This document shows positions 19,037-24,470 of a DNA stretch of 64,000 nucleotides, in pieces. The notes under the pieces were generated by a model. That model made no database searches, had not been told where the DNA came from, and saw only the letters and a program-made list of their open reading frames with translations. The position numbers were made by a program, and so were the translations under genes. Source of the DNA: Epithemia pelagica (Eukaryota; Protista; Bacillariophyta); NCBI GenBank assembly GCA_946965045.2, contig OX337230.1:1984001-2048000 (forward strand). Direction: 5' to 3'. The stretch's first letter is position 1. Every line of letters begins with the position of its first letter.

Positions 19037-19182
19037 GATTGGTTGGCGTTTGGAAAATGGCAAGCAAAACGATATTCGTTCTGTTCGTGGCGTTTGGCAT
19101 ATCCTCAATCTGTGATATCAGATATCATTCTCGTCATGTGAAGGGGGGGAATAAAACGTCACAAAATTGAGACGAAATGCAA

Positions 19183-19608
19183 TGGCAGGCAGAATATGCG
19201 CGACTAAATATTTCCCTATCTCCTTGTTCGTTGCTATGCCAACCCAGCTTTGTATCTAGTTGTAGGGGTGGAAGTGGAATGCATTGAACTCCTACTCCTA
19301 CTCCTCTTGTACTTTTCCTAGTCGCAGGTTGGAAACATAAAGAGGAAGGATTCAACAATGCCGACGAAACAAGCAAGCATTCTATGTCGCAGAAACTTGT
19401 AACATCAAAGCCACGTAGTGGCAGGCACAATATACGCGCCTAAATATTTCCCTTTTCAATTCGTTGCTACTATTGCTATCCTTCTATGCCAAGCCAGCTT
19501 TGTAGGGGTGGAACTAGTGCAATGATTCAATAATGTCCACGAAGGAAGCAACCATTCTATGTCTCAGAACATGAAACATGTGACTTCACCTGAAATCAAA
19601 GCCACATT
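19183..19608. repeat. Degenerate tandem duplication, unit about 236 bp
   Basis: tggcaggcagaatatgcgcgactaaatatttccc at 19183 recurs as tggcaggcacaatatacgcgcctaaatatttccc at 19419. Shared downstream blocks (cagctttgt, tgtaggggtggaa, gattcaa, cattctatgtc, tcaaagccac) are in the same order; copy 2 lacks an internal segment. Confidence 0.75.
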
Positions 19609-19645
19609 CCGCCAAGATCAGCACACACAAAAATTAATTCAATGT

Positions 19646-19701
19646 TCAACACACCTATGGTCGAGCACCCTTGTCAACACACCTATGGTCGAGCACCCTT
19701 G
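19646..19701. repeat. Perfect 28-bp tandem direct repeat overlapping the stop codon of the DUF262-HNH gene
   Basis: tcaacacacctatggtcgagcacccttg at 19646-19673 and again at 19674-19701. Confidence 0.95.
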
Positions 19702-21335
19702 CTGAGGTTGCATGCCGCATGAACTAGGGCAGCATTCTCTTCAATAGATGGGCCACCCATGGAATATGGACGGATATGGTCCAAGTGTACGTATGACCCA
19801 TCGTCCAGTCGATGGAAGTCAATTGACTGGTTGCAAATTGTGCACAGACCGCGTTGTTGCTCATAGAGTTTTCGTTTGAGCTTTTCTGGATTGTCAAACT
19901 GGCGCTTTCCGTCTTGCTGTTCTCGGAGAATAGCCGCGAGCGTCTTGGTCATTATAGTTCGGCGATGAATGAACTTGGCGACAGACGTTGGTCCATTGAA
20001 ATCCAACTCTCCAGATTCAAACAGCCTCTTGATTGCATTCTGTAGCTTTTCTTTGTTGCGTGTATAAACAGCCTCGGAGGGGAATTCGTTTCGAAGCTCT
20101 TTGAATACAACGTAGGACACATCCCAAAATTGTGGTTTGATACTTTTCGTCCAGCTCCACGTTCCATCCTTTTCTTGGTTCCAAGAACGAAATGCTCCTG
20201 CATTCTCAGAGAACACGTTGCGCCATACTTTCATTACAAATACAAAATCATCTTCATATTTTTGCAGCTCATGCTTCAATCGATTGGGGTTTGCCTTTTC
20301 TAAATTTTCAAAGTGTTCCAGTTCGGCATTCAGAAATGTTTTCATGGGGCTCTTGTACTTGGAGCTGATATGAGCCCAGGCAAATGCCCGCAAAATGAGC
20401 TCTCGATCACTCTCTCTTTTGCAGAGCGTGTACTTGTTCTTCTTGAAGTCATCCGGCTTTCGGATGCATTGAAGATCTTGATTTTCAGCCAACTTATCCA
20501 AGAGTTCAATGTAGGGACCATAATACACGGCACGTCGCAACTGTTGGGCCGACAAATCCTCTCCCCCCGAATTGATATCTTCGTAACACGAAAAGACATC
20601 TTCCTTGGTTGCAGTGTGGGGTATGATTGAGCAGGCAATGTCATAGTTCTCGTAAACATTCTGTCGTTCCTCCGACAAGTCGTCGAATGTCAGTCCATTG
20701 AGAGCATCGTAATTCTCGTCCAATTTTCCCAGTTTGATAAACTGAGTGGAATAACCTTTTGAACCACTATCAGTCTCTTGGCTAGCTAGAAAAAAGCTGA
20801 TCAAGGTCGTCAACCGCTGCTTGCCATCCACCACTTCATATTTTCCTTTTTCTCTTTCGTGCAAGACAATTCCTGGTGCCAGGCGATTACAAAGCACAGT
20901 CACTACCAAGCGTGAAGCGCGATCTTGTTCCCAGACATAACCACGTTGATAATTTGGATTGAGCGTAAGCTTGCCTTTGGTTACCCATCCGGCTAGTCCC
21001 TCAATAGACAGTAATTTGGGGGATCGTCCATACAGTTGGTGACTTTCAAGTTCTCTCAAGGCGTTATCAAACCTTTGTTTTACTACACCATCAGTGCCGG
21101 AGTTTGTGGCAGAGAGTTGGTCTTGGCGGAAAGAGAATTCTCTTGTCGCCATGGCGCATCGTCGTGGTTCTGTCCACCGTCTCCCATTCGTATGAATGAT
21201 TTGACGGAAGACAGAAACCGGCATCCGATTCTGCCATGCATTTGCAGCACTGTAGCAGATCATGAGAGTTCTGGAGAACGTCCATACAATTCCAACCGCA
21301 ATTGCTCGCAGTTTCATGCCCGCCTTCCTGATCAT
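19683..21335 (-). CDS. DUF262 (GmrSD N-terminal, ParB-like NTPase) + C-terminal HNH endonuclease, intronless, with putative bipartite plastid presequence
   Basis: DUF262 motifs LNPNYQRGYVWEQDRASRLV, YEVVDGKQRLTTL, YEDINSGGEDLS. HNH motifs CTIC...HLDHIRPYSMGG...ENAALVHAACNLSKG. Likely ATG at 21335 or 21317; the ORF track extends to 21500. Confidence 0.88.
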   Translation of the reverse strand: MIRKAGMKLRAIAVGIVWTFSRTLMICYSAANAWQNRMPVSVFRQIIHTNGRRWTEPRRCAMATREFSFRQDQLSATNSGTDGVVKQRFDNALRELESHQLYGRSPKLLSIEGLAGWVTKGKLTLNPNYQRGYVWEQDRASRLVVTVLCNRLAPGIVLHEREKGKYEVVDGKQRLTTLISFFLASQETDSGSKGYSTQFIKLGKLDENYDALNGLTFDDLSEERQNVYENYDIACSIIPHTATKEDVFSCYEDINSGGEDLSAQQLRRAVYYGPYIELLDKLAENQDLQCIRKPDDFKKNKYTLCKRESDRELILRAFAWAHISSKYKSPMKTFLNAELEHFENLEKANPNRLKHELQKYEDDFVFVMKVWRNVFSENAGAFRSWNQEKDGTWSWTKSIKPQFWDVSYVVFKELRNEFPSEAVYTRNKEKLQNAIKRLFESGELDFNGPTSVAKFIHRRTIMTKTLAAILREQQDGKRQFDNPEKLKRKLYEQQRGLCTICNQSIDFHRLDDGSYVHLDHIRPYSMGGPSIEENAALVHAACNLSKGARP

Positions 21336-21733
21336 GGCGATATCCCCAAGAAGAAGAAGGGGTTTTGCGGTGAAGGTGAAAGATGCGGTCGCGTTTTCCG
21401 AAAAGATCGCGTCGCAAAAAAAGATCGCTTGAATCATGTCCGTCAGTCGTCCGTCCACACGTACTCCTTCGCGTCCACAGGGCCCTCCGAGTCTTCTCAT
21501 TCTCTCATTGATCTTTCTCTATTCTCTACATTTTCTTTACTGCAGATCGTTTGCTCAACTTCGCATTCGGTAGAACAGAACCACAAAAGAAAAAGCGACG
21601 ACCAGATATAATCAAACTGGGAGAGAAGGCGAGAAAAGGACAAGCGCGGGTCCTTTGGAATTGGAAAAGAACGAGCTACTCACTTTGTTGGTCGAAAACC
21701 TCCCGGTGGTACCGATACAAGTCACTGGATATC

Positions 21734-24470
21734 ATGCCGCTCCCTCGAATGAGATCTCGGTCAAGATCCAACAGTTTGCGTTCCAATCGAAGCAATTCCT
21801 TCTCATCGGCGGATGGCAGCCACAAATCGCAGGGAAGTGGTAAAAAGACACGAAGCAAGCATGTGGATGGCAAGTTACCTCCTCCTATTCTGGTCTACCA
21901 TGAAAATGCTCATTCGATTGTGTTTCGAGACCATCTTCGACGAGTCGCCAAGCGTCAAGGATCATCTAATCTGAGTCGAAGTGATAGCAAGCACGAAGAT
22001 CCACAACGACAAGTATCATCGGCATCGTCTCAACACAGTGACACTTCCAAGCCGAAAAAGAACGCTCCAGTTAGTAACACGGAAGATTCGCCACGCCGTG
22101 ACACCTTTATTGAAGTCGCGACGGAATTTACGCACATGGTTGGAATGGACAACGGCGAGACTGTCATGCCGTCGCAAGCGCAGATACCAAGCGATCAAAT
22201 TGCCAATTTTCAGCCCCAGATCCAGCCACTGCCACTTTTGGCACTCGGTCCAGACGACCAATTTGGTCCCCTCGCGCAACAGGTACCCGTCCTTGAAACG
22301 GAGGATTCAGATAGTGATATTCACAGTGACTGGTCTCCGGCGGAAAAAGAGGTGGTCGGACTCTTACAAACCGAAAAGGCTTGTGTTAAAACGGTGCGGA
22401 ATGGGGATTGGACGGCCTTTTTGACGCGATTTCAACAGACGCAATCGCAGCGTGGGAAGTGGTCGACTCATCATATGGACATTGCACCACACGATGGAGA
22501 TGACTTTCCCTTCAATAGTTTTGTCACCAGTACCAGTTTGTTGCCACCCAGTGGCAAAAAGATGCGATGTTTTGGTGCCATTAATCAATACACGGTAGGA
22601 GTCGTCTTTGCCTTGCCAAATGCTTTCCAGAATCCAAACGATAAGACAAGCGAGACTGAAGCTGAAGCGTGCGACCGTACGAAAACATGGTCGTGGCCTG
22701 CAGGATGTACGAGCACTTGATCAACGTGAAAAGGGAAAATGTCTACTAATTTCCTTACAATCTCACACCCTTGCTTTCTTGTCTGTGTCCACAGATTCTG
22801 CCAAGACAGAATTCAACATTGATAGTAGAGGGAATTTGACGAATGGCCGTCAGGAGGCCCTCACATCTCTGGCAGTAATGCGGAAATACAACCATGAATA
22901 TCTGCACGAAGAAGAATACACAGTTGCGGGACGAAAGATTTCGGGTCTTAGTCAGATTCCGTACAATGAGGTGTTTTTGCGTGTAGGTGGACGTGGTCGG
23001 ATTGCTTGTGGGGTCGATTGCGCGTCGGACAAAGATCGAAACGACGCGACAGGGACAGGACGATCGTTGGACCATGGTGTGGGCTTACCTGTGGCACTCT
23101 TTGTTCGATCGGCGTCCTTTGGACATTTGATTTCCCTGTTGCGTACGAGGGCTCGCTGTGCACATGTTTTGGGCGAAGCACATTTTAAGGATATTCCCCT
23201 TCTGCTCATTACATCTGAAGAGGGAACGCGAGTGTTGACAGAGTCGCTTCAAGTAGAATTATGGAAAGTTGCATCGCAAAACCTAAATCCCTTCCAAAAT
23301 CCTGCACTGGCTCGACGAACCACTATTGACAATATGGATGAACCATCGTTTCAACAAAAGGTAGATGAGCTACTGGACTTGGATGGGACCATTCGAGAAA
23401 AACTCACTCCGGATGAATTAGCTCGATTAGCTGGAGGCTTTGGTGCCACAGATGAGAGTGTTGCGGATATGCTAAAGCAAGTGATGTTAGATGATATCAA
23501 GGAAAATCGCCAACGTCGTCACAGCAGCCACGATGAAGGCAAGAGTGCCCCTGAGGAGGAAAGTCACCATTTACAAGATTTTGTGAACGAAGGATTAACT
23601 GCTGCTGTACGTTCTGGGGATTATTTGACGGCTCGGCAGTTGTTGATCCTATACTCCGTTGTAGCGACACGGAAGGAAGAGCTAAATGATGCGGACGACG
23701 AATCCCTGAGCGACTACAGTGCCTCGGAGTGTAAACAGAACGAGAGATCTTTGGAACGGCGCCGCGAGGTTTCGCTTGGGAAGGATGCGCAACTACTCGT
23801 CGAGGATTTGGAACTCGTGAAGAAGCATGGGAATACTGAAATTGCTACAGACATTCCTGCGCCTCCACCTCCACCGCCGCTGGATACAGATCGTCTTCGG
23901 GGAGCAACCAACTCCGATGGTCTATTGGCTGTTTTGGGTGCTGCTCAAATCCTCAAGGCGATGCAAGATGGCGGAGCGAAAAAACGAACAGAAGAGGTTG
24001 TGGATGCAGTCGATGATTGGTGTACCCATGGCGAAAATTCCATGGCTTTCCGCATCTCTTCGTGGTACGATCAACGTGCCGCTCAAGACGACTTAAAGAT
24101 CGCTACAGAGGTAGGTTTTGGCTTCTGGCACTGGTGATTCAACACGACCCATCATCATTCTCACCGTTGACATATCATGTTTTGCCGTGTAAAGAGTGAT
24201 TCTACCTTTATGGCATTTGTTACCAACAAAGCAATTGCCAACCGTCGAACGTTTGCAACGCAGCTACGTCAAGCCGTGTCGAGTACCAATTTTGCAGATG
24301 TGAGATTTTTACGAGCCATTGAAGAAACGGTCAACAACATGCATGCGCCTTGCTTGCGTCTTGAACTTTTGCAGTACGTGTTGGGATTGGATAATCGTTT
24401 CTCTGTGTCCCACGTTAGTCGAGCCGTACACTTGGCGGTCACATGTTTGGGAGTTTCCAGTGGGGTGTAG
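21734..24470 (+). CDS. Uncharacterised protein, 3 exons
   Basis: ORFs 21551..22720, 22608..24137 and 24177..24470 are joined in frame by GT-AG introns 22707-22794 (WPAG|YSAK) and 24111-24194. Confidence 0.7.

Follow-up and report, generated by a model that had tools for sequence, protein, structure and literature searches.

The 64,000 nt stretch of the diatom Epithemia pelagica analysed here (assembly GCA_946965045.2, contig OX337230.1, positions 1,984,001–2,048,000; hereafter the window) carries, at 19683..21500 on the minus strand, an uninterrupted open reading frame (ORF) in which a DUF262 (GmrSD_N) domain is joined to a C-terminal HNH nuclease domain. The ORF is best explained, with moderate confidence, as a functional single-exon nuclear gene of this pennate diatom, encoding a DNA endonuclease of bacterial-immune ancestry that would be gated by nucleoside triphosphates (NTP) and is probably imported into an organelle. 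Counted from the first ATG the product has 605 amino acids (aa), with the stop codon at 19683–19685. In-frame methionines occur at aa 1, 22, 56, 62, 80, 93 and 117, and the true start is uncertain; a start at Met56 gives 550 codons and corresponds to 19683–21335, the extent given in the original prediction, which had been made from the letters of the window without database searches.

Both domains named in that prediction are present, with all of the motifs it quoted. Pfam assigns GmrSD_N/DUF262 to aa 174–326 (E 5.3e-27; 95.7 bits, cut-off 33.2) and HNH to aa 553–604 (E 1.6e-7; 31.8 bits, cut-off 21.4), and the combined domain and motif signal is far beyond chance. The DUF262 module (20523..20981, minus strand as are all features of the gene) is of the ParB/Srx-fold, NTPase type with PxYQR, DGKQR and INSGG motifs, seen here as PNYQRGYVW (20931–20957), VVDGKQRLTT (20805–20834) and DINSGG (20562–20579). 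It is preceded by a lead-in helix (..ALRELESHQLYG.., 20982..21080) that is conserved in the eukaryote clade only, and followed by a helical middle domain (19911..20522) homologous to the C-terminal, DNA-binding half of the Menshen protein NsnA, for which the name ParBDB is taken from PMC12065111; the assignment draws on the span of the PADLOC NsnA match and on a helical model with a predicted local distance difference test score (pLDDT) >90. The C-terminal HNH domain (His-Me finger; 19686..19910) is of the Cas9 type according to Pfam, a Protein Data Bank (PDB) profile and structure alignment, and follows the pattern CTIC...DH...N...HAACN..K, with CTIC at 19833–19844, DHIRP at 19767–19781 and HAACNLSKG at 19695–19721. 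Two alignments of homologues from eukaryotes and bacteria, with 19 and 59 sequences, show the residues of the nucleotide pocket (Q/R of PxYQR, DGxQR and the N of INSGG) to be invariant, together with C553, C556, D574, H575, N589 and N598 of the HNH domain; H594 and C597 are kept in 90 % or more of the aligned rows. The nuclease domain, earlier called apparently intact, is therefore whole in its catalytic residues.

The top PADLOC model is Menshen NsnA (E 2.5e-48; aa 165–497 against profile positions 52–351 of 385), with PD-T4-2_A and then Cas9 HNH models ranking after it. Within NCBIfam a Cas9-type HNH alone matched, at a score far under the NCBIfam cut-offs. DUF1524 (PF07510) had no Pfam match in the protein at E values up to 0.1. 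Because DUF1524 is absent, the protein is not a GmrSD in the strict sense, and the proposed identity with GmrSD, BrxU and SspE has to be given up in that form.

An AlphaFold2 model of residues 130–605, built from an input alignment of 59 sequences, has a pLDDT of 92.5 and a predicted template modelling score (pTM) of 0.80, with three modules visible. The chains placed highest by Foldseek are BrxU (7p9k), DndI (9jfl) and SspE (6jiv), followed by the cytidine triphosphate (CTP)-binding domains of ParB, Noc and KorB and then by Cas9 HNH domains. Alignment with VIA-align relates the HNH domain to those of the type II-C enzymes Nme1Cas9 and GeoCas9 (Z 8.2–9.2, 33–35 % identity across approximately 70 residues) and to T4 endonuclease VII (Z 7.2), and the protein as a whole to BrxU (Z 7.6 across 282 residues). 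A PDB profile search, in which Cas9 HNH matched at E 7e-12, agrees with the structure alignments. The protein is thus modelled as a DUF262 NTPase-type module, a helical DNA-binding module of the NsnA (ParBDB) type and an HNH of the Cas9 type; it would amount to a sensor of the Menshen kind to which a nuclease has been fused.

The locus is found in four public runs, all of one study, of which three are DNA and the fourth (X4) is of unrecorded kind. DNA contigs of the three runs pass straight through the locus, and one (20475–23077) links the ORF to the neighbouring divergent gene. An X4 contig skips 88 nt with GT..AG ends in that neighbour (the intron at 22707..22794, plus strand), and X4 therefore derives from RNA. 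On the nuclease gene the X4 contigs cover 20080–20330, 20397–20661 and 20945–21239, with none on intergenic DNA; their depth is 2.6–4.4, against 51–73 on the neighbours. This suggests weak transcription, probably at a low level, although the contigs cannot prove level, strand or ends. Among runs recorded as RNA, none contains the locus. Collinearity with homologues, together with the same RNA-like contigs, indicates that the DUF262-HNH core contains no intron, as had been predicted, and both closest orthologues are likewise single ORFs.

The surroundings are those of an ordinary eukaryotic gene, as the prediction had also held. The flanking ORFs encode by Pfam a SET domain, a 2OG-Fe(II) oxygenase, an FAD-dependent monooxygenase (the downstream gene, divided between two ORFs) and a GT28 glycosyltransferase, in addition to the neighbour with the spliced intron. 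The GC content of the ORF (0.467, and 0.483 at third codon positions, GC3) equals that of neighbouring genes, and the nuclease gene is single-copy within the window. A search for defence partners with PADLOC on six flanking ORFs gave a generic 2OG-oxygenase domain only, and no terminal inverted repeats or transposon ends were found around the gene. The product of the divergent neighbour (21704–23847, plus strand) is rich in S and R and matched nothing in Pfam or PADLOC; this gene has the highest X4 depth.

Several features of the DNA at and near the gene ends may be recorded here. A perfect 28 bp tandem duplication (19646–19701) extends from the final six codons of the nuclease gene across its stop codon into the beginning of the 3′ untranslated region (UTR); the protein is unchanged by it, because in gene orientation the frame terminates in the first copy. 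DNA contigs of all three runs end beside this duplication, at 19493–19678. The spacer between the 3′ end of the nuclease gene and the 5′ end of the FAD-monooxygenase gene (19138–19570) holds a degenerate duplication of approximately 240 bp, with repeat families D1, D2, D4 and D5 of 71–100 % identity, and runs X1 and X3 have a 6 nt deletion at 19215. Run X3, from another sample of the same study, also shows a 3 nt in-frame deletion at 21348, upstream of Met56, and ten substitutions in the ORF (20026–20878), all at variable positions; these are 6 nonsynonymous and 4 synonymous changes, too few to interpret. The in-frame deletion and the substitutions are allelic or strain variation.

The gene is kept by selection. 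In comparison with the closest orthologue the core has a pN (proportion of nonsynonymous differences) of 0.23, a pS (proportion of synonymous differences) of 0.69 and a ratio of nonsynonymous to synonymous rates (dN/dS) of approximately 0.14 with dS near saturation; against the Epithemia orthologue dS is saturated. Purifying selection is strong on all three domains, whereas the N-terminal extension has a dN/dS of 0.75–1.1. The core is thus far from neutral, and with its motifs whole the gene has been retained intact in its nuclear context, as originally supposed.

A word-based search of 5.8 billion proteins returned 135 relatives, of which approximately a quarter carry names. Some 80 relatives group in one eukaryote-like clade; it holds diatoms, the haptophyte Emiliania and a chrysophyte and, at a greater distance, the green or streptophyte algae Coccomyxa and Spirogloea. 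The closest relatives are diatoms, the best at 65 % identity and the next, from Epithemia clementina, at 57 %; the 45–65 % range takes in Epithemia, Seminavis robusta, Amphora coffeaeformis, Rhizosolenia setigera, Odontella aurita (the last two transcriptome-derived), Bacillariaceae bins and Emiliania. The Emiliania huxleyi homologue is 49 % identical, that of the chrysophyte Hydrurales CCMP1899 33 %, and those of Coccomyxa species and Spirogloea muscicola about 31–33 %. No named match from Phaeodactylum or Thalassiosira pseudonana is among the 120 matches listed. Bacterial DUF262-HNH proteins (approximately 430–450 aa) share 23–31 % identity, the best 28–31 %, and align over 96–100 % of residues 160–605; in the bacterial locus L004 tblastn covers residues 2–446 of 446.

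In a maximum-likelihood tree of 62 rows and 450 columns, 40 eukaryote-like rows fall on one side of a branch supported by an ultrafast bootstrap (UFBoot) of 92 and a Shimodaira–Hasegawa-like approximate likelihood ratio test (SH-aLRT) value of 85, and present in 96 % of bootstrap trees; many rows are metagenomic proteins, assigned as eukaryotic by tree position only. The nearest bacterium is a Proteobacteria bin, L003 (93/96). Diatoms form a clade (100/98) in which centrics branch first and raphid pennates are nested, roughly as the species do, with Emiliania as their sister (100/99). Among the green-lineage homologues, P0081 and P0082 (Coccomyxa), P0092 and P0093 (Spirogloea) and P0084–P0089 have the DUF262 and helical domains without the HNH, and constitute a eukaryotic, NsnA-like, sensor-only form.

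The gene is accordingly a member of an old family of photosynthetic eukaryotes, derived from bacterial single-chain DUF262-HNH proteins of defence islands. The ancestry is bacterial and defence-like, and the acquisition is older than the diatom radiation, perhaps much older, with no donor that can be named. Of the horizontal acquisition first proposed, the bacterial type of the protein and the location of its relatives in defence and mobile islands stand; a diatom-specific transfer does not, given an old algal clade (UFBoot 92), and neither does a close donor, given a best bacterial identity of 28–31 %. An endosymbiont origin, cyanobacterial or alphaproteobacterial, was considered and rejected: the nearest bacteria span Proteobacteria, Planctomycetota, Myxococcota, Actinomycetota and Thermodesulfobacteriota, and cyanobacterial matches are partial, covering DUF262 only. 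A viral origin was rejected as well, the best viral contigs being 28 % identical and prophage-like. An ESM Atlas feature search gave bacterial and phage clusters only, with no eukaryotic taxonomy returned.

The nearest bacterial genes adjoin a helicase, an Eco57I/MmeI-type methylase-Schlafen fusion, large serine recombinases and a transposase, surroundings that are those of mobile defence islands. In L003 (21–7230) a helicase gene and a gene for a 1393 aa fusion of an Eco57I/MmeI-type methyltransferase with Schlafen AlbA_2 immediately precede the nearest bacterial homologue; a large serine recombinase adjoins, and the whole looks like a compact mobile defence island. In L002 (10001–12272) a bacterial DUF262-HNH gene is followed by a DUF262-only gene with overlapping stop and start, which suggests a two-gene variant of the system. 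Microsynteny of the diatom gene with the closest orthologous loci, L001 and the Epithemia locus L163, was absent within 10 kb on each side, and is uninformative because the compared species are too diverged (dS saturated). Both orthologous loci, L001 (1–5061, 21197–21632) and L163 (400–6750), lie near Copia-type (RVT_2) elements, and L001 also has a piggyBac-type (DDE_Tnp_1_7) transposase.

The eukaryotic proteins differ from the bacterial ones at the N terminus. The distance from the start to PxYQR is approximately 27 residues in bacterial homologues and has a median of 92 in the eukaryote clade; at least 25 residues beyond the conserved lead-in helix are present in 51 of 62 eukaryote-clade proteins and in 0 of 27 bacterial ones. 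These extensions are Ser/Thr-rich and poor in acidic residues (4.5 %, compared with 14.2 % in the core). Sixteen of them open with a signal-peptide-like hydrophobic stretch, as is expected for import into complex plastids; clear cases are Hydrurales (MMAILLTLLFCVQFIASSTA..), P0038 (..VQKMEA/F) and P0045 (..RFSSG/F), where the slash marks the junction between a small and an aromatic residue. Most of the others resemble mitochondrial presequences, e.g. Seminavis, Epithemia and P0016, and green-lineage members have long A/R/T-rich N-terminal extensions. Transcriptome-derived members (Rhizosolenia, Odontella, Hydrurales) also have an extension.

In the E. pelagica protein the candidate presequence comprises aa 56–140 (21081..21335), with a basic start, a hydrophobic AIAVGIVWTF, the junction SAANA/W and an R/S/T-rich stretch, and it evolves almost freely. 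Read from Met56 or Met62 it begins MKLRAIAVGIVWTFSRTLMICYSAANA/WQNRMPVSVFRQ.. and continues into the R/S/T-rich stretch; set against the pattern of complex-plastid signals in diatoms (a signal peptide, then small-x-small before F/W/Y/L and an acid-poor transit peptide), the sequence reads MKLRAIAVGIVWTFSRTLMICYSAANA/WQNRM and its hydrophobic stretch is borderline. The in-frame leader upstream of Met56 (21336..21500), which contains acidic residues, is not presequence-like and lies outside the RNA-like contigs, is probably 5′ UTR or promoter. Two observations support a real extension. Two near-identical orthologues differ by one indel only, a single codon, in frame, that falls within the extension. 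Additionally, an RNA-like contig reaches 21239 and thus includes the in-frame ATG of Met93 (21222–21224); the ATG is therefore in the mRNA, and ribosome scanning should initiate there or further upstream. Overall, import of the protein into an organelle, either plastid or mitochondrion, is judged somewhat more probable than its absence.

A number of points weigh against organelle import and against the wider explanation given at the outset. The small-residue/aromatic (ASAFAP-type) motif is not significantly enriched: 10 of 16 extensions have it, shuffling gives 6.5 on average, and 115 of 2000 shuffles reach the observed figure. In composition the extensions come near to translated random upstream DNA, and gene callers tend towards the longest ORF. 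The two closest orthologues start in a mitochondrion-like rather than a signal-peptide-like manner. Emiliania, P0004, P0006 and P0021 have no extension, and in Emiliania a KKRKQK cluster may act as a nuclear signal. For X4 the kind of run is not on record, and its contigs cover the ORF at low depth (2.6–4.4) and stop short of Met56. Finally, the metagenomic rows of the tree are counted as eukaryotic on their placement alone.

By analogy with BrxU, SspE and DndI (PMC10952713; PMC12065111), the DUF262 and helical domains would bind DNA, the binding and hydrolysis of NTP would change the conformation or oligomeric state, and the switched state would license the HNH domain to nick or cut DNA. The HNH site would be formed by Asp574-His575, Asn589 and Asn598, and zinc would probably be bound by Cys553/Cys556 and His594/Cys597. 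The likeliest workplace would be the plastid or mitochondrion, because an acid-poor N-terminal extension is usual in the eukaryotic proteins and missing from the bacterial ones, and the likeliest substrate would be organelle DNA that is foreign, aberrant or differently modified. That green-algal homologues keep the sensor half only hints that DNA binding is perhaps the conserved core activity, which is compatible with maintenance and with defence alike. A more far-reaching proposal, which is tentative and on balance doubtful, is that a bacterial anti-phage sensor-nuclease was taken over for good by photosynthetic eukaryotes and put to work in the organelles that contain DNA, as an NTP-gated means of restriction or surveillance of plastid or mitochondrial DNA. 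Its targets might include plasmids of the organelle, invading elements, and genomes that are unmarked or wrongly marked, with red-plastid algae keeping sensor and HNH and green algae the sensor half.

Action on viral or foreign modified DNA, as the original prediction had it, is not supported as written, and nothing found points to an antiviral role. In its explicit form this would be a nuclear or cytosolic restriction factor, type IV-like, that recognizes a base or backbone modification on diatom or algal virus DNA and cuts it. The bacterial relatives in defence and mobile islands would fit such a factor, as would the use of DUF262 as a modified-DNA sensor in GmrSD, BrxU, SspE and DndI (PMC10952713; PMC12065111), and some eukaryotic members indeed have no extension, Emiliania carrying the basic KKRKQK cluster. 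It is nevertheless unlikely: 51 of 62 eukaryotic members have an extension that bacteria do not, the single copy in the window, slow evolution (dN/dS 0.14) and inheritance roughly along the species tree are unlike arms-race turnover, the nuclease is lost entirely in green-lineage members, and no defence partner genes are nearby. Since most eukaryotic members carry the extension, the substrate may be organelle DNA rather than nuclear or cytosolic viral DNA. Less probable again is an organelle genome-maintenance protein, i.e. a ParB-like nucleoid protein or NTP-dependent DNA clamp with an HNH that would act on branched, damaged or surplus DNA of the organelle in recombination, repair or turnover. 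The green-lineage homologues, with DUF262 and the helical DNA-binding domain only, suggest that the conserved job is binding and not cutting; the DUF262 fold matches the CTP-dependent clamps ParB, Noc and KorB, the HNH resembles the junction-resolving T4 endonuclease VII (Z 7.2), and strong purifying selection with vertical descent is typical of housekeeping genes. However, the HNH is nearer to the Cas9 type than to resolvases, and the lack of a named Phaeodactylum or T. pseudonana match among the 120 listed would be odd for an essential maintenance factor, although names are attached to only approximately a quarter of the matches.

Two further explanations concern the residence of the gene. 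HNH nucleases are frequent in mobile elements, and a selfish or mobile gene, homing-endonuclease-like or a transposon passenger moving in diatom genomes, could also explain the missing microsynteny at the closest two orthologous loci, which each lie near Copia-type elements, the first near a piggyBac-type transposase as well. This is very improbable, as no terminal inverted repeats bracket the gene, one copy is present in the window, the phylogeny tracks the diatom species tree and all three domains are under strong purifying selection; with dS saturated between the compared species, the loss of synteny is weak evidence. A bacterial contaminant, or a gene newly transferred into this one species, would suit an architecture otherwise typical of prokaryotes and a gene without introns, and is counted as refuted. 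The DNA contigs of three runs, one of which joins the ORF to its spliced neighbour, establish the linkage to flanking genes, the ORF matches its neighbours in GC and GC3, and the closest relatives are diatoms at 57–65 % identity, compared with at most 31 % for bacteria; together these exclude contamination.

The literature on this family is slight. A 2015 survey (PMC4619093) noted GmrSD homologues in three eukaryotic genomes, including that of Thalassiosira oceanica; searches for DUF262/GmrSD with diatoms, algae or organelles found no paper on the algal family, its antiquity, extensions or function beyond that remark, and no functional study of the bacterial single-chain DUF262-HNH architecture was found. 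Existing database labels on some members read ‘Protein of unknown function DUF262’ or ‘HNH Cas9-type domain-containing protein’. Bacterial immune-protein homologues in eukaryotes are an active topic, and the cases described in the literature searched do not include DUF262 nucleases. The family described here, in which algae have domesticated a DUF262 nuclease of the bacterial defence type, is old, widespread in algae, strongly constrained and often equipped with an N-terminal extension. If import is true, a restriction-type, NTP-switched nuclease would act on organelle genomes, of which no description was found, and this would bear on the policing, turnover and inheritance of organelle DNA in ecologically dominant phytoplankton. 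If the extension is not a targeting signal, a candidate eukaryotic type IV-like antiviral factor remains. In either case the protein is small, encoded in one exon and easily tested.

Among known systems, the bacterial single-chain DUF262-HNH proteins (PF03235 and PF01844; loci L003–L007, P0083, P0090, P0094 and P0114) have the same domain order, are collinear end to end and share the invariant NTPase-type and HNH residues; they differ in lacking the N-terminal extension and lead-in helix and in residing in mobile defence islands. GmrSD, BrxU, SspE and DndI share the DUF262 with its DGxQR pocket and the succession of N-terminal NTPase, helical linker and C-terminal His-Me nuclease, and are the best whole-chain structural matches at 12–15 % sequence identity. 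They carry DUF1524, however, where the algal protein has a classical HNH (PF01844, Cas9-type), and the diatom gene is eukaryotic, nuclear and provided with an N-terminal extension. The catalytic D-H...N...N pattern is that of type II-C Cas9 HNH domains (Nme1Cas9, GeoCas9), relatives at the domain level only; the RuvC, REC and guide-RNA apparatus of Cas9 is absent from the diatom protein, and whereas the Cas9 HNH has no zinc site, CxxC...HxxC in the diatom protein suggests one. Arabidopsis sulfiredoxin, a ParB/Srx-fold relative in which nucleotide-dependent activity is linked to nuclease activity (PMC4619093), is likewise a protein of this fold in a photosynthetic eukaryote, but is small and single-domain, without DUF262 motifs, HNH or detectable sequence kinship. 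Menshen NsnA gives the best profile match, covering DUF262 and the helical ParBDB-type domain (PMC12065111), and its exact two-domain form is found in the green-algal homologues. NsnA itself lacks a nuclease and acts with NsnB (an ABC ATPase) and NsnC, neither of which is near the diatom gene among the six flanking ORFs; the diatom protein, in contrast, carries its HNH in cis.

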